The notes beneath the pieces were generated by a model. That model was given only the letters and a program-made list of their open reading frames with translations, was not told the origin of the DNA and did no database searches. The translations under genes were made by a program, and so were the position numbers. From assembly GCA_038496445.1 (NCBI GenBank), contig JALMLS010000578.1, forward strand, positions 372,001 through 436,000: a stretch of 64,000 nucleotides of DNA. The letters run 5' to 3'. Shown here one piece after another: positions 6,041-60,028 of the stretch; within the stretch, counting starts at the first letter, position 1, and each line of letters opens with the position of its first letter. The DNA is from Trichosphaerium sp. ATCC 40318 (Eukaryota > Protista > Tubulinea).

Positions 6041-6748
6041 TCAAAAGTAGTGGCAACAATTATAACCTGGGAACTGGAAGGTAAAATTTGCTTCTACTGT
6101 AAGCCATTTCTCAGCACCTTCACGTGTTACTCGTGTACCAGTGATATCTATTTCACTCACACCTGAAAGTGGTTTAATGGCTTCATCAGTAATACCTGTA
6201 CATCCACGTAAGTAAATGGCATGAACACCCACAAGTGATTTGACGCCTTCATTTGTAACACCATAACATCCATTAATGCGAATGGTATGAACTCCAGCAA
6301 GTGCTAATTCTTTGATACTTTTATCAGTAACCTTTGTATGGCTAATATTAATTTCATGAACCCCAGCAAGTGCTCTTACTCCTTCATCAGTTATTCTCTT
6401 ACACTTGGCCATATTAATGGTATGAACTCCAGCAAGCGCTTTGATCCCTTCATCAGTTACTGAAGTCCAGGCAAGGTCAATAGTATGAACACCAGATAGT
6501 TCTTTGACCACACCGTTAATAACGCTGTAATGAAATCCAAAAATAAACACGTGGACTCTTGTTGTGCGGAGAAGATTACCACATTGTTTAAACGCTCTTG
6601 CTTGTTCAGCATTTAAAATATCGACTTCGCCATAGCCAACTATGTCATGAATGATAGATGCGAACCGATGACAGGTTTGACAAGCTGCAAATCGCTCGTC
6701 GTCTATTTGGCGTATAATATGAGCTAAAACCTCTGCAGGGAAGTCCAA
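6041..6748 (-). CDS. F-box + leucine-rich-repeat protein (main exon; a small upstream exon is likely)
   Basis: F-box ILDFPAEVLAHIIRQID..TCHRF, then repeats of GVHTI.l..c..vTDEG(I/V)kaL. Acceptor-like gtttag just upstream of the ORF. Confidence 0.85.
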   Translation of the reverse strand: MDFPAEVLAHIIRQIDDERFAACQTCHRFASIIHDIVGYGEVDILNAEQARAFKQCGNLLRTTRVHVFIFGFHYSVINGVVKELSGVHTIDLAWTSVTDEGIKALAGVHTINMAKCKRITDEGVRALAGVHEINISHTKVTDKSIKELALAGVHTIRINGCYGVTNEGVKSLVGVHAIYLRGCTGITDEAIKPLSGVSEIDITGTRVTREGAEKWLTVEANFTFQFPGYNCCHYF

Positions 6749-31787: not shown

Positions 31788-34700
31788 ATGCTCTCTATAC
31801 ATAAGAAAAAGACGGATACCGTCGATTTAGACAAGCCGTTACGAGCTTTTATCACAGCAAACCACCCAAATGTCGAAATATTCAACGACGCTCTCCTAGA
31901 CATTAATAATTTACGGGAGAACATAAAAGGCTCTCAGGATCAAAATGAAAACGCTTTTAATTTATATTACCGGTAGGTACGCTCCTGAGATGCTGTGATA
32001 TTAATAATTTTAGGTATTATGCCTATGTGGCGTCAATTTCTGGTAGAGTGCCAATAAATGAACAAGAGGTACGTAGTTTGCCTCAATACCACCTCTCCCA
32101 TTATTTCTGTTAACCGAATTCAAGATACGCATCAATTTCATCTGGTACGACGCGTTTAAATCCAAGAAGCACAGTACGTTCTTATACGCGCCTATCCTTC
32201 AAAATGACCATTATTCTTCTCCTCAAACTCATTTTTACGCTTCTACAGCCTTCCAAACGCTCGAGTCTTACTTATTTTTGTCCTGTAGCATGCTATCTTC
32301 CTCAATACGAACTTGGAAGCATTATGTTTAATCTTGGAGCTCTCATGTCTCAAGCAGGCGCAGCCGTTAACAGATCAACTGATGATGGTATAAAAAACGC
32401 TTCTAAACTATTCCAGACTTCTGCTGGATGTTTTCTAATGGCTCGTAACGTCATGGGAGCGTCTCCGTCCGCAGCTGTATCTGAGGATCTTGGAGCAGAG
32501 CCACTACAAATGCTAACAGATATGATGCTCGGACAAGCACAGGAGTGCTTTGTAGAGAAAGCAAACAAAGCAAAAATGAAACCAAAGATTGTAGCCATGC
32601 TTGCTGCCCAAGCTGCTGATTTTTACCAACAAGCACGTGCCAGAATGAACACAATCAAGAATTTGATGAAAGCAAAGGTATGGGAGTGTCTTCTCTATGA
32701 TCGATTCTTTTTGTTTATTTTTTCATTTTAGAAAGTTAGAAATTGGCCTTTAGTTATGGATTATAGATCGAGTTATATGAATGCCTTGGCTCATTATAAA
32801 TTGGGTTTGGCGTGCCAAGACGCTTGTGAATATGGAAAAGAAGTAGCACGTCATGGATTAGCGCTTAAGTTTTTGGGTGCGCTGAAGAACTAAAAGAAGT
32901 TTTTTTCATCTTTTTTTTTCTTTTTGTTCAGAAATTCCTTTGAAGGTCCGACCTTTTCGAAACAACTATTTGTGTAATGGTACTCATTATATTTAATTTT
33001 AGATGGTGTTAAATCTGCTAAGCTACCACAAAAACTTTCCTTACAAGATGAGTTCAATAGATTTTACAATCAAGTCCATTCTGCCTTGATGCTAGCCGTT
33101 AAAGACAATAATCAAATTTACCATGAATCAGTACCAAATGAGCATAACCTTGAACCATTGGCCAAAAAGGCTATGGTACGCGCTGTACAACCTGATGCTT
33201 CGAAACTAGAGATCCCAAAAGAAATGGGTACGATCAATTGTTGTACTTTTTTTTTTGTAAAAAACATTTTATTTCTCATTTCAATGGCGTTTTGTGGCCG
33301 TATCGTATGGTTTTAAGTGCAAACACGTACATACACGTACTGATAAAAATATTTTTATCTGCTTAGATGCCGCTGAAAGAGAAAACAGCAGCGGATTTTT
33401 TTTTCTGTTTTTTTTTACCGAAAATTTAAGGTATTTGTTCGTGTAGTGGTACTAATTATATTGTTGTAGATCCATTCACTCAACTTGTTCCTTTCCGTAT
33501 TCTCAAAGCATCAAGCGTATACACTGAGAGAAAGGATGAATTGGTTAGATCAGTTGTTAAACAAGTTGAAGACTATAATGGCGTTTCAAAGACATCTCTC
33601 CGTGAAATGGGTCTTCCTGGGTCTCTTGAAGCTGCAGAGTCACCTACAGGTATACCTGTCGCACTACAAACAAAGATGCAGCGTGTTAGACGTGAAGGTG
33701 GTACCAAATCAATTAAGGAACAAATGGAAGTTTTGGCGGGTATGGCTGAAGAGGCGAAAGGCATGGTGGCAAAGACTACCAAGCTTCTTGATGATGAAGA
33801 AAACGAAGATAATGCAATGAGACAGAAATACTCAGGACGATGGGCAAGGACACCAAGTCATATGTACGTACAGTACTTTTTTTTTGGTTCTTTTTCCCCC
33901 TTTGTTCACTGGTTTCCCTTTGTCTTCTATTGTGCTTATACGTTTTAGTCTGACTGTACAACAACGTGAGGAAGAAAAGAAATACAGAGCACATATTGAG
34001 CATGCTGTCAAATCTGATGCCTTTGTGAAAGAGAAATTCAATGACAATGCGCAATATATTGATATGTTGGCAAAACCAGAATCTGAGCTTGCTACTATTC
34101 TTCCACAGGATAGTCGCGCATCAAGCGATAAACAAATAGTTTCAAGACTTAGAGGACTTGTAAGTGAGCTTGAAAAGTTAGATCAGACAAGAACAAAGTT
34201 ATTACAAGACCTTAGAGATATGGCACAAAAGGTACTATTTTTATCTTTTGTTATTTATTTAGTTTGTTGAAAACGATACCGCTTTTTGACACGTGCTTTT
34301 GTTCACACTCGAAAGATATTATTTCTTGAGAGATAAATTCAACCAAAAGAACTTTATTTCAGAGTGTTTAAAAGCCAGAACGTTGTTTATTTTTTTTTGT
34401 TTTCAATTATATTTTTTTCTAATGCGAAACTTTAGGATGATATAACGAATATTATGATTACCAAGAGCGAAAATGAGTTTGAAGAAGTATTTAATGTTGG
34501 TCTTACTAAGTATACACCAATTGTCACTAGTATAAGAGAAACAAGTGATACACAATCAACACTTCTATCAAAAATTATGGTGAGTTTTTTTTTGTTGATT
34601 TTTTTTTTCAGTTCACTTTAAACAGCTGTTAACGCATCTGTCAGGATGAGAATGCCAAGTTTGTCAACTCAAGAGGAAGTGCTACTGCTCAAACACAGGA

Positions 34701-46817: not shown

Positions 46818-47612
46818 TTACTGACTTACGAGATTCATCTTCATTCTCTTTAATCTCTCAAAATTGCTTCCTTTAAAAGAATATGGTATACCCAAGGACT
46901 TAATAGCATCTTCTGTGATACAGCGACAATAAAATACTTTAATACTCTCAAGTGATTTTAAGTGCTTCAAAAAGCCATTTGTGACTGCTTTAGCATTTTC
47001 AATGGTGAAGTGTTTTAAGTTCATTAATCCTTTCAATCCATCATCTGTTATTTCTTGCCCATTTTTAATAATGAGTGTGTTCACATTAACAAGTCCTTTT
47101 ATCCATTCATCTTTCGGTTCACGTAAGGTAACAGTATGAACATTTCTTAGCTCGTGTATTCCTCTACTTGAAATATAGTGGCAGTACATAATACTTATTG
47201 AATGTACATCTTTGAGTATCTTTAGACTGGCATCTGTTATGTTAAGGTTTGTTAGGGAAATGTCATAAACAGGTGTCTTCCCTCCTTGTACTAAAGCAAA
47301 GATACCTGCGTCTGAAATAGGTGCTGATCCTAGACTTATTGTGTGAACGCCTGAGAGACAACACAAGTCTTTATCCTTTAGATGCATTCCCATACGATAA
47401 GTATAAGTGATAGTGGTGTTTTTTAGCAAAGAACTTCCGTTGATAACCATTAGATCTTCTTTTTCTTTTAGTAGAAGATATACAAAGCCTAAATTATGCC
47501 GAATAATATTATTAAAACGATGACTAACTGCTGTAGCATTAATACGGTTATTTTTGTCTAAATGGCTTAGAAGATGTGTTAATATCTCTGTTGGTACATT
47601 ATCAATAGACAT
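46818..47612 (-). CDS. F-box + leucine-rich-repeat protein (intronless)
   Basis: IDNVPTEILTHLLSHLD..VSHRF F-box; GVHTISL/ITDASL/ITDDGL LRRs. Same family as 6041-6748. Confidence 0.85.
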   Translation of the reverse strand: MSIDNVPTEILTHLLSHLDKNNRINATAVSHRFNNIIRHNLGFVYLLLKEKEDLMVINGSSLLKNTTITYTYRMGMHLKDKDLCCLSGVHTISLGSAPISDAGIFALVQGGKTPVYDISLTNLNITDASLKILKDVHSISIMYCHYISSRGIHELRNVHTVTLREPKDEWIKGLVNVNTLIIKNGQEITDDGLKGLMNLKHFTIENAKAVTNGFLKHLKSLESIKVFYCRCITEDAIKSLGIPYSFKGSNFERLKRMKMNLVSQ

Positions 47613-50700: not shown

Positions 50701-53635
50701 CGCAAGTCATTGCCACAAAGGTACGCCAAACAAACTAGGAAAAAAACCTAAAAGCATAAATAATATTCGCATTTTCTTGGCTTCAAGCTTCTCTTTTGGT
50801 CTGTTTTGACAATTACCAATGAACATGTATTGTTTTTTATTCGATTAATAAGCATTTCCTTCGGATTTTTTTTTACATGAACAAGATATTGACGTTTTTC
50901 TTTGATCTAGATCATAAAATCCAATTCGTATCCAAGTTAAGACCTGTAATTTGTTCATGTGATACAAAAGGATGCCAATTAGGTAATAAACCGAATATAC
51001 CTATTGGTGTTATGGATGATCCTATAATTGATCCTAAAAATACTCTACTTAAAGGTAAGAAAATAACAAGAAAAACCTTCTACAATGAAACTCGTTTGGG
51101 TTTTTGAATGACTCCTTTCTCGCCTTTCTCATCTTTTACTTTCTTCCAAGTCAATATTCCACGTGGTGTTATATTAAGAGAAGAATCTATGACTGTTTCA
51201 ACCCGACTTTCAGTGCCACAAACAGTTATTTCATCGCTTCCTGTTACGTACTTCGAAATTGATATTGTTGATCCTGGATACAACTTTCTGGTTACCATCG
51301 GGCTTTCTGGAAACGATATGCCTAATAATAAACTCCCAGGATCCACCAAGGGTACGTAAACAACTCTTATACTTACAACCGAAAAATCTCTCGAGCACCT
51401 AGCTGTTGGCAACGTTTACGATTTTGTTTGGATTATTGTACATTTGTTAATCTGTTCTGCAGGTTCCATTGGATATTCATGTACAGGAAACCTGTTTTAT
51501 CATAAACACAAAGAAAACCTAGGACCTGGATTCTTCGCTGGTACGAGTAAAAAAGCATGTTTTCATTACCAATTAAAAAAAAAAAAGGTCAAACAGTTGG
51601 TTGTGGTATTACAAAGCAAGGCTTGATTTACTTTACACATGAAGGAATTCTAGTTGCTACTACAAAAGCAGAGCAACTTGATCCGAAGCAATCACATGCA
51701 TCAATTGGATTTAAATCACTTGGTATTGCAGTAAAGGTACACAATTACAAACAAACAATTATTTTCGTCAACCAAACCTAGCCGAAATCTTATCGGTTTT
51801 TTTTCGATGTAGGTCAATTTTTCTGGCCCATTCGCATATAATCATAAGCATATGAGGAATCTAGCATCTACAGATATTAGTAGTTTTCCTCTACTTCTTA
51901 AAACATCGAAAGAAGCTCTAGTAAGAAAGCAATCAAACAAGATTTATCAACCTCTTTTGAATATTGGTAAAGTACTAGAAGCGAGAAGAAAACCACAAAG
52001 TCTTCATTCAAGGAGATATAAGAGACTTAAAAATAAGCTTTTACCGAATACTTCAAGATCACAGTCAATGAGAGAAGTTAATCCACGTCAAAGGTCTCAC
52101 TCACCTTCAGCAAACTTGCGAAAAACCGAATCATCCTCGCTGTCTTCTAGCGGTGGCAGTATTTCTAACATAAAATCTTCATTCCCTCGTGCTGTTTCTA
52201 TTGATGGCAGTACTAGAACTCCTTCTCGTAACGACAGTTTTGATTCAGTTACATCTACAGGTATAAAGAAGAAAAAATACTCTGTGTTTTCTTCGTTTTT
52301 TTCTATTTTTTGCTAACGTTTATTGCAGGGCTCCCACACGTGAAAATGGGTTCTCCTCGGTCAGAAGGTATTCTTTTATACAAAAGATATATGTTGTACT
52401 AATTACTATTTTAGAATCGCAAAAGAGGTCATCTCAGAACCAACCATTCCTCCATTTTGATGATCTTGCTGGTGCGTTAATACTATTAACAAGTTTGAAA
52501 GGTGCAAGTATTTTTGGATATGTTTTTCCTCTTCATCATCAATAAATATACTATGTCATCTTCCCTCTGAGGGCAAAGCAAAAGAGGACTCAATTTGCTG
52601 ATGGCGGGAGAAATAGCACTTCCATCATACTTCAACCCTACTTCCGTCACAACAGAAAGAAAGTGTTTAGTGTACTAACTTGTGTTAGCGGATAGCACTA
52701 TTGGTCGAAAAAGTTTAAGTGGTAATTCAATATCAAACCAGTCTCTCATACACAGTCAAATGAATCCAAATCCCGAGAGTGTACATCCAATAAGAACTCA
52801 TCGGATAGGCCGTCAACAACAAACGGGGAGAAGCCAGCGTCAGCAAGTATCTCATTCTCCTGTACAACCTCAAAGGCAGCAAAACGACTTTTGGAGCTCG
52901 CAAGGAAGCTCTCAGGAATACCATTCACAAACACATAGTCCAAGATCTTTGCGTGGTTCTCGTGGATCGTCTCGGGGACCTAACGTAGATCAACCAAGAA
53001 CACAACAAGTTTCAAGAAGTTCGAGTTATGAACGCCCGAATAACATACAACCAGCACAGACACATACCAGTAATCGGTCTCAACAACGCCAAGATAGTGG
53101 GCAACTTAACACAGCTCCACCATACACCGCACGTGGTCCAAGAGGTCAGTCAAGTACTGAAGGAGTACAGAGAAGTTACAGCTCAAACACAAGTTATAAT
53201 CAACAAAGGAACTCAAACGCACCTACGCCTCAACATTACAATACAGCACGTATGGATAGTACTATCATTTTTGTTAAACTACTTTATAATTACTTTTCTA
53301 GCTGCTCAACCACAATCTTCAACTTTCACAGTTGTTTGTATCGAGGACTTTGAACCTACAGGTAAAACTATTTTTGTTCATTTTCATTGAACCCGGACGA
53401 GTTTTCTACTTGATCGTCTTGTTAATGATATACTTTTTGTTTAGATCCAGGAGAATTACGTATTAAGAAAACACAAAGAGCTATGGTACAAAGAGAGGAA
53501 GACGGATGGTATTGGGGTACTGTACAAGACGGAGAAGGGAATACGAATTCAGGATATTTCCCTGTATCATATTGTACTCGTGTACGCTCACAACCAAGTT
53601 TTTCATCAAGAAGCACACGTCGAGGGTGGAAATAA
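47761..53635 (+). CDS. N-myristoylated Ser/Thr kinase with helical region, UBR-type Zn finger, SPRY, disordered linker and SH3
   Basis: MGQGQS; GKGAFG, VALK, HRDLKPAN, DFG, YMAPE, DVWSLG; YFTCNTC..ICFTCASHCHKDH..CSC; TYFEI..IGL..LPG..GSIGY..GQTVGCG; DFEPTDPGEL..GWYWG..GYFPVSY. Confidence 0.82.
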
Positions 53636-53998: not shown

Positions 53999-56900
53999 TT
54001 AATTTACGTTGCTCTCAAGACTAGCAATTCGGGCTAGTAGTTTGGTATTTGTTTTCTTCAGCTCTTCTAATTTGGCATTGGACTCTGTAATGATGGTTTT
54101 GTTTTCTTGCTCAAGCTTCTCAATTTTTTCTTTTAATGATGTTAGAAACAGATCTTTAGCGTTTGGCTGTTCAGGTTGATTTGGCTTTGCAGCAGCCCAT
54201 AATTGTCTTTGTAGTAAATTAGAGTCCAGTGGTTTGTACTATCTTACCGTTTAGTGTTGAAATCATTGTCATCAGGCAAGACTGTCTCATTTCCACAAAT
54301 GCTTCGTTTCCTTGGTTTCTTTACAACCTTAACTATGTAGCGTGCTACAGCTTGAACATCTAAATTCTAATTAATAAGTCATGGTGATCAGTTTATATTA
54401 CCTTGAGCCACAACCAACTCATCATATGGATACTCATCAATGTTTTCTTTCACTGCTTCTCCCATGCTGTTTACCACTGCGTAGTGACTTTGGTATCCTG
54501 GTTTGATAGGTCTACCCTGAAAGCTTTTCTTGTCTCCAGGCTTTTCGATTACCTAGTAGCAGTAAATAATGCGTTACAAACATTCTTTCTATACAGGATA
54601 CACATTCCCAGGTGTAACAAAGCTCAGAATTAGTGTTTTTTTAAAAGCACTTGGGTCACAAGAGCAAGCGTATGTAATACTGTTCTATTGTAAATATTAG
54701 AAACTAGTTGGGTGGACAAAAACTTTCTGAAAAAATTCTGAAATATTCTTATTTTCTTTTTTCAGTTAGACAACAGTATTTTTTAGTCATACTGTGAAGT
54801 AAATTCCTTGTCCGTAGTATCCAGCATCTAATGCGCTTGCAGTTCCAAATCCAGCTTTTACAATACTATCAGCTGCCTCAGCAGTTGTTCCATGTACCAT
54901 TAAGACAACCGGCAACTGAGTAATTAGTCAAGTGATAATCATCTTAAATGGTACCTCTGAGCTGTTAGTAGTCAAGGTTTTATGAGAAATTAGATTTTTA
55001 AGCTTGTCAGCAATTTTCTTCCGTGCGTTACTCTTCCAATCGTCTTTACAAAATAACTTGGGTAGTTCTCTAAAAGATGTAATAAATAAATTACCATTCT
55101 CAAAAGTTTCATGATAAGTGAAACGTACTGATGTCTGTGTTTAAGTATTGTGTTGTACATCCCAAAGTTGTGAAGCAATACATCATTGCAAACAAGCTTT
55201 GCTGATACAATTGTTACTCGGTTGTATCCATGCATTTCCGACATCAGATCCAGAAGACACTTAAGTTCTCTTTTAGCCACTTTATCAGTCGTATCAAAGA
55301 GGTCCAGTGTTTTGTAATGTGTCGCTTTTTTTATAAAACCCCTTTTACAACTAAATTAAACATAGCAATAAAGAGTCTGAACATACTGATTGTTGGATCT
55401 ATCCCAGTTACGTGCACACTCTAATCTTGGGTTTAAGTCCCAAGAAGTTTTGCTTGTTAGTCCTAGTTGAGAAGTCAATTGGTAGGAAAAACAGAAACAC
55501 TTGTACCTGCTTTAGTGTTACCTAGTTTAGTATTTGGTACAATAGGCTGAATAGCAGATACGCCACATTTACATCGCACAGAGGTGTCATTGTTAAATTT
55601 CTAGCAATTGTTAATGTTGTTTGGGTTTGTGTTTGTACAATATTTCCACCAAGTGTGTGCTGAGCACATAGACAGCATATGAAATGCTCATCAAACGCTG
55701 TAAAAAATCAAACTGTTGACTTTAAATAGGTACTTATTTGTGCACGTACATTCTTCTGAATTTGGTTGAATGGAGTTTAAACACCACCCTTGTTTCACAC
55801 ATATTTGATCAACTGTACCAGCTTGTAGTTCACAGCTCCAAATATCATCAGGTAGATCAAACAAGATACCTTCCATTAATTCTCCTTGCTGAACCCAAAA
55901 GGTCTATAAATGATATGAGTTATAACAAACTGAGTATCTGTGTACCGAAGATTGAACAAATATGCGATTATAGGAACAAATTAAGGTACAAATACCTTTT
56001 TGTATTGCAAGTTTAAAATAAGAACGTGTTGGCTTTGTGTATTGTTAGTAAACAGTTTTTGAAGATTTAATGATGTACCAAGTACTGTAACCATTTCGCA
56101 AGATTACATCTCCATTGTGGATAGTTGTCTATATGCGCACAAGAAGACCAAAGCATTTGGCTTGCTTGCTTGCCAGTCGGAAAGTGTGATAACAGAGTTT
56201 CAAAGACTTTTGTGTATGCAGGATCATTATCAACCACCTTAATTAATATAGTCTGAAAACCAAACTTTTGGTTGCTCATAGTCCGTGAAAAAACATCACT
56301 GGCATCAGATAAAATAAGAAACACAGAGGTATGTTCCAATTGTCCTAACAACAGTGTTAATTTCTTGATACTGTATACAGTATTGTAATATAGAACCTGC
56401 GTAAAGTAAAGGAGTCCATCCTTTGTTGTCTACTGATTCTACGTTTGCACCTGATTTAATTAGCTCCTCAACAACCATGCTGTGTCCATGTTTGGCTAGT
56501 AGGAAATGAATAAAATGTAGGTAAGATGTGTAGCACCAGCAAGATGTAAAGCGGTACGGCCATCAATATCTGCCGCCTCAATTTTTACTTTTGATCGTAC
56601 CAATACTTTAACAATATTGTTGTGTCCACAACATGCTGAGACATGTGAATAACAAATAGTGTTATGAATGAAAATATTGTACCAGCAGCATGTAAAGTTG
56701 TTTGACCTTTCTTATCTGTAGCGTTGATATCGCCATTGGCTTTGATTAGTAATCTAACCATGCTTATGTGTCCTTTTGATCCTAAAAAAAGTGAGAAATA
56801 CACTTGGAATTGCGTGTTTATGTTTCGAAACCGAGTAGCAAGATAGGACCACAACCAGCTTTAAGAACCTTTTGTTCTATAATTACAATGCGTACCTGCA

Positions 56901-58357
56901 ATATGTAAAGGTGTAAATCCGTCATCATCAACAGCATTGATATCCGCTTTCTCTTTGATTAGTAATTTAGCACTGCTTGTATGTCCAAATGCTAATAAAT
57001 GTGAGTAGCATATATTGTTTCCACAACAATGTACCTGCAACATGTAAAGCTGTCTGTCCTTTGTCATCTGCGATATTGATATCTGCGGTGGCTCTAATCA
57101 GTAATTTAACAATTATTGAGTGTTCGCGAGTTGCTAAGATATGTCAGTTACATTGCATGCTTGTGGCAACAATGTACCAGCAATATGTAACGCTGTCCAT
57201 CCAATATTGTTCCTAGCATTGACATCTACTTTTGCTCTGATCAGCAGTTTGACAATATCAGAATGTCCATACCGTGCTGGCAACAGTGAGTAACATAATT
57301 ATTTACCATACTGACCTGCAAGGCGTAAAGGTGTACATCCATGGTCATCAGCAGCGTTGATAGTTGCCTTCGCCCTGATTAATAACCTAACGATACTTGT
57401 GTATCCACGTGATACTGATACTTGATTAGCACATTGTACACTTACTATCTGCACCTGCAAGATGTAAGGCTATCTGTTTTCTATTATCCGCAGCATTGAC
57501 ATCTACTTTTACTTTGATCAGTATTTTGACAATCTCAGTGTATCCATTCAAAGCTGATACGAGTGAGAAAATACATTTACGACAAACGTACCGGCAACAT
57601 GTAAAGCTGTGCATCTGTTATCATTTGCAAAGTTGACATTTGCGTTTGCTTTGGTCAATAGCGTAACAATACTTGCGTGTCCACGTGATACTGAGCGTTA
57701 TGTGAGTAACGCTCAGTGTACCTTTACAATGTACCTGCCACATGTAAAGCTGTCCATCCTTTATCGTTTGTAGCTTCAACATTTGCTGTTGAACATACAC
57801 ACATCGATACAATAATCGCCAAATCCATAGATACTAAATAATTAGCGTTGATTTCTACTAACGCTTATGCTAACCTGAATACAAAAGGATATCATTGGCT
57901 GTGTCTGGTATACGTAGCGCCTTCTTCAGTCTTTTTTCTAGAAGTTGTAAGTACTTATAGAAATTGCATGCAATATCACTTGTACCTGTTGTAATAGTAT
58001 TGAAACGTCGTTGTTGCCGAAGCGTTCTTAGTTCGGCTATGTGTGGTTAATGTGTAAAAGAAAGATCATGTCATCTTTAGTTTTCAGCAAACAAGCACAA
58101 GTTGTACGATTGTTCGAATAAAATTTCATATCACGTGTTGGCAAAAGTCTTAAAAACGCCCGATTACGCCATTTTGTAAGCACTAAAATGATTGAAACGA
58201 TTTGTATGTGCATAATTTCCTTACCACTCCAAAAAAAAAACTGGTTTACAGTTTTAAATGCAAGCGTATAAAACACAATGATTGTACCTTTTAATTTTTG
58301 CTTATTTGTTAAATTTGCCTCTGCTCCTGCTACTACTGACAGTTTTCGGGGTTCCAT
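53999..58357 (-). CDS. Ankyrin-repeat / degenerate UBR-ZnF / PARP-like ADP-ribosyltransferase / coiled-coil protein
   Basis: Hand-spliced open frame from MEPRKL (58357) through 10 ANK exons to LMVHGT, LDAGYYGQGIYFT, ITYA, TPGNVYPV, GYQSHY, YDELVV and a terminal coiled coil; TAA at 53999-54001. Confidence 0.75.
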
Positions 58358-59293: not shown

Positions 59294-60028
59294 TTACTTG
59301 GCAAAAAGTGGTCTGCCGCTATGTATTTTAAAATGTACACCATTAACAGCTGTGTATGTTCCTCGTACACTTCCACAAGGATTGTATTCTATGCAATCAC
59401 CATGCTTTTTACCATTAACATACAAACACTGTGATTCCAGTTGACCATTGAAATACCAATTCAACATCACTCCATGTTTTTTGTTGCCAACACAGTTAGC
59501 TTCAATGGCGATTTTACCATTTCTGTGCCATTGCCGATATAATCCGATCTTACGACCATCAGCATATGTACACTTAAGATCAAGTTGCCCATTAGAAAAC
59601 CATTCTTTACATTCACCAACTTCTTTGCCATCAACATAAGTACATTGAACTTCGAGCTGTCCGTTACTAAACCATTTCTTGTACTCACCAGTTAATTTAC
59701 CTTTGACATACCAACAATGAAGTTTGAGTTGTCCATTCCTATGCCATTCTTTGAGTATTCCATTGTTTAAACCATTAATCTTGCTTTGCTTAGATTTTTG
59801 TTTACCGTTATCATACCACTTCATCCAAAAACCAGTCTGTTTAAGGTCACCATTATAATGTGTATTCGTGGCAGCCTTTTTTGAAAGTGAATTAAACTTT
59901 GTAAATGTTTCTGAGTTAAAAGAACATATGTAACATTGAAGTTCACGTGGAAGGTCTAATATATTAGTTGTAGTACGGATAAGTGATTCTTTGGAACAAG
60001 AAGTTACAGCAGATCTAAACATAGACAT
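59294..60028 (-). CDS. F-box-like + MORN-variant (YwqK-like) repeat protein, single large exon
   Basis: ILDLPRELQCYICSF, then about 6 repeats of G.yk.W(Y/F/H).NGql...c.Y..Gk. Confidence 0.8.
   Translation of the reverse strand: MSMFRSAVTSCSKESLIRTTTNILDLPRELQCYICSFNSETFTKFNSLSKKAATNTHYNGDLKQTGFWMKWYDNGKQKSKQSKINGLNNGILKEWHRNGQLKLHCWYVKGKLTGEYKKWFSNGQLEVQCTYVDGKEVGECKEWFSNGQLDLKCTYADGRKIGLYRQWHRNGKIAIEANCVGNKKHGVMLNWYFNGQLESQCLYVNGKKHGDCIEYNPCGSVRGTYTAVNGVHFKIHSGRPLFAK

Follow-up and report, generated by a model that had tools for sequence, protein, structure and literature searches.

A 26-exon ankyrin-repeat gene of Trichosphaerium predicted to encode a divergent H-Y-E PARP-type domain

A 64,000-nucleotide stretch of the genome of Trichosphaerium sp. 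ATCC 40318 (contig JALMLS010000578.1, positions 372,001 to 436,000; here referred to as the window, in whose own numbering all positions are given) harbors, on its minus strand between 58357 and 53999, what we consider likely to be an intact protist gene specifying ten ankyrin repeats, a linker, probably a Cys-rich insertion, a divergent PARP-type domain with an H-Y-E triad and a coiled coil. Judging from its motifs, the PARP-type domain is assigned to an unnamed PARP branch, recognizable by GYYGQGIYF and KPGYQSHY, which appears to serve as a C-terminal output module behind many binding modules. The gene is, by profile and domain searches, classified as a member of the PARP superfamily which is neither a tankyrase (clade 4) nor a clade 1A ankyrin PARP.

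Catalytic domain and exon structure

The predicted catalytic domain is specified by six exons, designated P1 to P6, which span positions 55350-54248. The His of its HGT motif lies at 54894-54892, the Tyr of GIYFT at 54801-54799, the Tyr of ITYA at 54672-54670 and the Glu of YDELVV at 54420-54418; a preliminary description of this DNA had named HGT, GYYGQGIYFT, ITYA and YDELVV and had located the His and the Glu, all of which were recovered exactly. Exons P3, P4 and P5 carry the invariant motifs of the branch (HGT, LDAGYYGQGIYFT, YA, PGNVYP, KPGYQSHY and DELVV), and the positions found to be invariant in the family alignment are G and T of HGT, I, Y and T of GIYFT, Y and A of ITYA, PGN, PGYQSH and E-L-V. 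The profile of this family aligns HGT and G-x-YF with LFHGTS and GSYFA of PARP12 and places E-L-V-V on the strand bearing the third triad residue, with the Glu at the start of that strand, an alignment in which H, Y and E coincide with the PARP triad, as had been claimed. A profile was needed for this comparison, as a single-sequence phmmer search of PDB with the domain of a relative returned no match.

For the window gene, every search, fold and tree reported here made use either of single exons or of its relatives P0001 and P0002. These were the two true relatives recovered when 1.84 billion cluster representatives were searched with exon P1 using HMMER (55-57% identity over P1); P0003, a further candidate, proved to be an unrelated repeat protein. 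Exon P3 alone matched positions 50-90 of the Pfam PARP family (PF00644) with an E value of 7e-4 and 19.6 bits, which is below the cutoff of 26.7 because the query is a fragment. The same exon matched the catalytic domains of PARP10 and PARP15 in PDB, while its TALE/Hax3 matches were discarded as repeat-summed noise with no significant stretch. Relatives which are 48-83% identical to the gene over P1-P5 exceed the Pfam cutoff, at 36.5, 30.9 and 52.7 bits; for P6, the identity to relatives is 15% by MAFFT, in an alignment which is partly misaligned. The AlphaFold comparison with PARP domains which the preliminary description had proposed was run on P0002 and yielded a PARP fold: the AlphaFold2 model of residues 167-416 reached a pTM of 0.76, and a Foldseek search of PDB with it returned PARP catalytic domains only, with a probability of 1.00 and TM scores up to 0.73, a match which does not discriminate among PARP clades. 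The PARP catalytic fold of the window gene is, in this sense, modelled by proxy, through the close relative P0002.

The gene model was built from a minus-strand reading of positions 58500-53800 in three frames and comprises 26 chained exons, predicted from the DNA, which run from an ATG at 58357 to a TAA at 53999, with GT..AG at every intron, agreeing exon phases and no in-frame stop. This chain bears out the earlier proposal of 10 ankyrin (ANK) repeats, a linker, an ADP-ribosyltransferase domain and a coiled coil in one frame. Introns measure 36-251 nucleotides (nt), most of them 38-59 nt. Exon L2 (56032-55946) was added to a chain of 25 exons through alignment with P0002, and a single 175-nt intron between L1 and C1 (56078-55904) was rejected since the match to P0002 places L2 inside it. 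P0001 and P0002, which derive from a single JGI sample and lie on contigs that are uninterrupted and resemble transcripts, are collinear with L1, L2, the first part of C1, C4, P1-P6 and the tail, the gaps falling exactly at the modelled introns; such collinearity with transcript-derived sequences is not a matter of chance and lends independent support to the splicing of the catalytic half. Codon usage, scored on a measure which was trained on exons and introns confirmed for this gene and calibrated by a leave-one-out procedure, was exon-like throughout (22 of the 24 scored exons above 0 bits/codon), while introns, scored in all three frames, peaked at +0.05 bits/codon. The GC content is 0.39 in exons and 0.31 in introns. 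From its sequence, the ankyrin-PARP locus is predicted to be a nuclear gene, intact and belonging to an intron-rich protist.

Donors starting with GTAC (GTACAA, GTACAT or GTACGT) account for 15 of the 25. In most introns, a CTCAC-, CTAAC- or TTCAC-like motif was also observed 8-15 nt upstream of the AG. Together, the GTAC donors and the motif preceding the AG represent an unusual splice-signal style, which could be used for gene models in this genome. The 26 exons are the following, in the direction of transcription:

58288-58357, minus strand: E1, with the proposed ATG at 58357-58355; reading frame open, donor GTACAA, phase 0 to 1; the intron after it, at 251 nt, is the longest; the least certain exon
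57986-58036, minus strand: E2, short N-terminal exon; AG/GTACAA, phase 1-1
57875-57937, minus strand: ANK0, first half of ankyrin unit 1; ends ..DTANDILLYS and runs into ANK1 as a normal repeat
57735-57785, minus strand: ANK1, second half of ankyrin unit 1; Pfam Ank match
57592-57690, minus strand: ANK2, one repeat, 99 nt; Pfam Ank match
57455-57553, minus strand: ANK3, 99 nt; Pfam Ank match
57316-57414, minus strand: ANK4, 99 nt; Pfam Ank match
57178-57276, minus strand: ANK5, 99 nt; best Pfam Ank match, 5e-8
57035-57133, minus strand: ANK6, 99 nt; Pfam Ank match
56896-56991, minus strand: ANK7, 96 nt, one residue shorter; Pfam Ank match
56683-56781, minus strand: ANK8, 99 nt; Pfam Ank match; preceding intron unusually long (114 nt)
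56537-56635, minus strand: ANK9, 99 nt; Pfam Ank match
56397-56495, minus strand: ANK10, 99 nt, the last and most divergent repeat; Pfam Ank match
56079-56344, minus strand: L1, family-specific linker; aligns to P0002 residues 13-68; no Pfam family
55946-56032, minus strand: L2, linker; PTRSYFKLA.. corresponds to P0002 69-90; AG/GTACAC, phase 0-0, flanking introns 46 and 42 nt
55750-55903, minus strand: C1; first 85 nt (to 55819) conserved with relatives, tail 55818-55750 carries CVKQGWC
55639-55697, minus strand: C2; FDEHF conserved, ICCLCAQH.. not in relatives
55507-55600, minus strand: C3, RCKCG..; counterpart in relatives for the last few residues only
55387-55462, minus strand: C4, ..SWDLNPRL..NWDRS; conserved with relatives
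55129-55350, minus strand: P1, strand-helix portion at the N-terminal end of the PARP-type domain; 55-57% identical to P0001/P0002
54955-55069, minus strand: P2, variable loop before the catalytic His; corresponding part of the relative's model disordered
54793-54915, minus strand: P3, catalytic His and Tyr, HGT ... GYYGQGIYFT; PF00644 positions 50-90; 83% identical to P0002
54595-54684, minus strand: P4, ITYA and ..PGNVYP; second active-site Tyr at 54672-54670
54402-54552, minus strand: P5, KPGYQSHY signature and catalytic Glu in YDELVV; E, L and V invariant in the family
54248-54359, minus strand: P6, last strand of the PARP-type domain and basic spacer; aligned with relatives
53999-54206, minus strand: last exon, coiled coil, ..LLARIASLES..; stop TAA at 54001-53999; tail conserved in P0001 and P0002

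The ankyrin array consists of ten units, the first of which is split over two exons, while each of the other nine occupies a single phase-1/phase-1 exon of 99 nt (96 nt in one case), with an intron that in every case splits the codon next after LHxA, behind its first base. All the units match Pfam Ank families. The repeat exons are only 51-74% identical to one another at the DNA level, with a weak two-unit periodicity (73% between ANK2 and ANK4, 74% between ANK3 and ANK5), and the array is, therefore, old and diverged. Two introns within it, 56895-56782 (114 nt) and 57874-57786 (89 nt), are long compared with those of about 40 nt elsewhere, and no decayed ankyrin repeat was detected in either by tblastn. 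The ensuing linker of about 160 residues is conserved with the relatives and resembles no known family, exon L1 being without a Pfam match. At the opposite end of the protein, the last exon was confirmed to specify a coiled-coil tail. Neither the catalytic nor the linker exons have a paralogue elsewhere in the window.

Relatives, proposed function and alternatives

The contig of P0002 holds a 260-residue ankyrin open reading frame (ORF), a short gap of N and then the linker, PARP domain and coiled coil, a layout which indicates that, in a paralogue, the ankyrin-to-PARP order is found in mRNA. A word-index search of 5.8 billion proteins with P0002 returned seven matches, one of which, from another sample, is a complete 540-residue ORF with ankyrin repeats and a PARP domain, while an Atlas search with exon P1 was uninformative (best score, 0.85). 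When the two most conserved motifs were applied to JGI metagenome contigs, 143 relatives with 27-47% identity were identified; 80 of these were retrieved, and their front ends were read from the long uninterrupted ORFs among them. The regions N-terminal to the catalytic domain of this branch were found to comprise Roc-COR, Ras with LRR, LRR, FG-GAP with EGF, Kelch, TSP1 and SUEL-lectin modules. Exactly one strongly hydrophobic segment, 21 residues in length, is present in each of L027, L025, L019, L013, L016, L012, L020, L023 and L029 (loci whose front ends are of the FG-GAP/EGF, TSP1, SUEL-lectin, Kelch or LRR kind), and the same holds for every member with an extracellular-type, LRR or Kelch front end. 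The segment is situated between front end and catalytic domain and precedes the catalytic motif by about 150-220 residues; it is missing from the Roc-COR member. By this topology, branch members with extracellular-type, LRR or Kelch front ends resemble single-pass receptors whose PARP-type domain is cytoplasmic.

In a tree of 45 catalytic domains with an arbitrary root, many rows of which lack a known front end, P0001 and P0002 form a long-branched clade of their own (100/100), sister (98/89) to a receptor-like group, while the ankyrin-bearing P0008 falls on the other side, with the Roc-COR members. It is, therefore, proposed from this placement that ankyrin arrays were probably fused to the catalytic module of the branch more than once. 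The only match among viral contigs (IMG/VR), L086:5001-5165, is a 55-residue partial sequence with 39% identity, which is too weak to be regarded as a viral homolog, and a giant-virus origin was rejected on the basis of this single partial match.

In what is considered the most likely mechanism, the groove of the ankyrin array would hold a protein partner, and the PARP-type domain would use NAD+ to add ADP-ribose either to that partner or to the protein itself. The coiled coil would pair or bundle the protein, much as the SAM domain does in tankyrases.

Several points weigh against the interpretation of the locus as an intact gene for an ankyrin-PARP enzyme with a Cys-rich insertion. The fold and the above-cutoff Pfam PARP match rest on relatives which are 48-83% identical over P1-P5. 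The gene model is a prediction, the transcript support for which stems from the contigs of relatives; no relative covers the start exons E1 and E2, and the Cys-rich part may be partly intronic. Furthermore, Q replaces the triad His in three distant members of the family (P0004, P0006 and P0007), while the window gene keeps H; the transcript-derived P0004 (locus L005:49-1806) has two tandem catalytic domains, the first N-terminally cut and the second complete with Q for His. PARP3 and PARP4, both of which possess H-Y-E, add single units, and an intact triad is no proof of activity or of chain formation; the distinction between a mono- and a chain-adding enzyme is not readable from the triad alone.

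An alternative which we regard as unlikely is that the protein functions as a sensor-effector of cell-autonomous defence, in which the array would detect a foreign protein and the PARP-type domain would tag it or deplete NAD+. While the combination of a binding array with an NAD+-using enzyme, and the presence of the same catalytic branch behind LRR and Roc-COR modules, are consistent with such a role, the repeats are neither homogenized nor unusually variable at binding positions relative to any ankyrin protein, viral contigs hold almost no counterpart, and many relatives resemble ordinary surface receptors. It also seems quite improbable that the gene specifies a catalytically dead scaffold, or that it is a decaying, unexpressed paralogue in a large family with fast turnover. 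The loss of the His in some distant members and the age and divergence of the repeats (51-74% identity at the DNA level) would fit this explanation; however, no stop interrupts any of the 26 exons and their splice sites are intact, every invariant family position is kept in P3-P5, and codon usage is exon-like throughout.

Cysteine-rich segment and relationship to known PARPs

The strings CVKQGWC, FICCLCAQH and RCKCG, which had been reported as a Cys cluster, are present in the sequence and in frame. Their segments score +0.17 (C1 tail), +0.05 and +0.27 bits/codon at a GC content of 0.35-0.41, values which lie in the exon range and at or above the best intron frame. P0001 and P0002 are without the Cys segments and read ..DDAW, seven residues, FFEHF, about seven residues and G/LKS. 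An alternative donor, GTACAG at 55818, would produce a 121-nt intron (55818-55698), dropping CVKQGWC in frame and restoring collinearity with P0001 and P0002. Excision of CCLCAQH..RCKCG would require weak donors and micro-exons, and this part is, therefore, more likely to be exonic. We propose, on the strength of these comparisons, that the Cys-rich stretch is a gene- or subfamily-specific insertion and not a UBR box, and that some or all of it is probably translated.

The UBR designation, under which the preliminary description had placed the segment, did not hold. The UBR box is a domain of about 70 residues which binds three zincs through a binuclear Cys site with a shared Cys and a Cys2-His2 site, the ligand spacing in UBR6 being C-x2-C-x3-C-x15-C-x-C-x8-C (PMC5606531). 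What the two have in common is a short Cys/His motif and a C-x2-C ... x15 ... C-x-C spacing, and the pattern of the gene, CC-x-C-x2-H-x15-C-x-C, echoes only the middle of that of UBR6. It is very unlikely that the gene specifies an ankyrin-UBR-PARP protein with a zinc finger for the recognition of N-terminal degrons: despite this resemblance to the middle of UBR6 (PMC5606531) and the exon-like codon usage of the Cys segments, piecewise searches of Pfam and PDB at E<=10 gave no match of any piece to zf-UBR (PF02207) or to solved UBR boxes. Moreover, several ligands are missing, with none at the expected 8-11 residues, or indeed within about 30 residues, after C-x-C, and neither a His-x2-His nor a Cys2-His2 site is present. 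The segment is also absent from the closest transcript-derived relatives, and use of the GTACAG donor at 55818 would delete the first Cys pair in frame.

To assign the catalytic domain among known PARPs, the family profile was compared with PDB, giving the following E values:

PARP12: 2e-8
PARP10: 5e-6
PARP4: 3e-5
ZAP/PARP13: 3.5e-5
PARP15: 5e-4
PARP14: 0.013
PARP1: 0.03 (marginal)
PARP16: 0.2
Tankyrase-2: about 1, with no significant stretch, ranking below PARP12, 10, 4, 13, 15, 14, 1 and 16

The best profile matches are thus to the mono-ADP-ribosyltransferases PARP10/12/14/15 (clade 3), with which the domain shares a compact size without the helical regulatory domain. The front ends of those enzymes, in contrast, are macro and WWE domains and zinc fingers, and structural alignments indicate 13-16% identity between them and the model of the relative. 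At the third triad position, PARP10/12/14/15-type enzymes have I, L or Y, whereas the window gene has Glu.

Like tankyrases (PARP5a/5b, clade 4), the gene combines ankyrin repeats at the N-terminal end with an H-Y-E PARP fold at the C-terminal end, a self-association element being located between or behind the two; unlike tankyrases, it possesses a coiled coil instead of SAM, 10 repeats and a catalytic domain which is not tankyrase-like. Tankyrases are confined to animals, are so alike that they are not subdivided and have 15-18 ankyrin repeats (PMC2964712). The description of the protein as tankyrase-like stands for the layout, in which ankyrin repeats precede a PARP fold with H-Y-E, but not for kinship (E about 1; 10 repeats). 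As had been predicted, the protein appears to be SAM-less: Pfam searches at E<=10 identified no SAM, WGR or PRD in exons L1, L2 and C1-C4, nor were these found in P0002, and WGR and PRD were without a Pfam match in any exon or in P0001/P0002. Since the catalytic domain is not of the tankyrase type (PARP12, 2e-8; tankyrase, about 1), the joining of an ankyrin array to a PARP domain is considered to be an independent assembly, in agreement with the preliminary description. Such combinations arose independently several times (PMC2964712, PMC4245714). The ankyrin PARPs of clade 1A (Dictyostelium ADPRT3, PME-5 of C. elegans and the giant proteins of Mucoromycota) likewise represent an independent fusion of an ankyrin array and PARP outside animals, one which is present in Amoebozoa (PMC2964712, PMC4245714, 10.64898/2026.07.25.740670); unlike the window gene, which has neither WGR nor PRD in Pfam, they possess both, together with a PARP1-like catalytic domain.

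That the gene is a true tankyrase orthologue which lost its SAM is extremely improbable, for although the PARP fold has H-Y-E and follows ankyrin repeats, and although the Foldseek matches include catalytic domains of tankyrases, the profile gives an E value of about 1 for tankyrase-2 against significant values for PARP12, PARP10, PARP4, ZAP and PARP15, the structural-alignment identity is 16-20% even though true tankyrases are highly alike and animal-only (PMC2964712), the repeats number 10 and not 15-18, SAM was found neither in the linker exons nor in P0002, and the catalytic domain's own kin carry unrelated front ends.

Genomic setting and significance

The GC content of the window is about 36%, and its general appearance is that of an intron-rich eukaryote. 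The draft genome of Trichosphaerium has been reported to have 37.7% GC and 8.7 introns per gene, with a mean exon of 154 bp and a mean intron of 75 bp; the paper describing it mentions neither ankyrin nor PARP (PMC10521059). In its GC content and its very short introns, the window is compatible with that genome. An Rfam search of the window returned no match. Directly upstream of the ankyrin-PARP gene, positions 59294-60028 (minus strand) hold an intact single-exon gene for a 244-residue protein of MORN_2 repeat variants (PF07661, E 2e-21), for which the public gene index holds no identical entry. In the convergent neighbor (52682-53635, plus strand), a low-complexity ORF rich in Q, S and R precedes an exon whose translation, ..WYWGTVQDGEGNTNSGYFPVSY.., resembles, by eye, the end of an SH3 domain; the ends of this neighbor and of the ankyrin-PARP gene are about 400 nt apart. 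Elsewhere in the window, we observed an F-box and LRR_6 fragment (6041-6748, minus strand), a second F-box protein (46818-47612, minus strand) and a BRO1-domain exon (32204-32731, plus strand; E 5e-37).

A literature search returned no description of a GYYGQGIYF/KPGYQSHY branch or of receptor-type PARPs. We tentatively suggest, as a possibility rather than an expectation, that this branch, undescribed to date, may be a general signalling output of protists, being cytosolic where ankyrin or Roc-COR modules precede it and, in membranes, forming the cytoplasmic tails of single-pass receptors whose ectodomains are of the EGF, FG-GAP, TSP1, lectin, Kelch or LRR kind, as "receptor ADP-ribosyltransferases" analogous to receptor kinases. 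The gene described here would then be a soluble member of a large and diversifying catch-and-tag repertoire, possibly involved in the recognition of prey, symbionts or viruses.

As fusions of ankyrin repeats with PARP domains recur, one more is not surprising on its own, and the value of the finding lies in the catalytic branch, which is very scarce in protein databases yet frequently met in eukaryotic sequence from the environment, retains H-Y-E and is joined to many binding and receptor modules. If active, the branch would suggest that amoebae and other protists use ADP-ribosylation as a receptor-proximal signalling output, and the Trichosphaerium gene would then be a compact, soluble member suited to biochemical tests.

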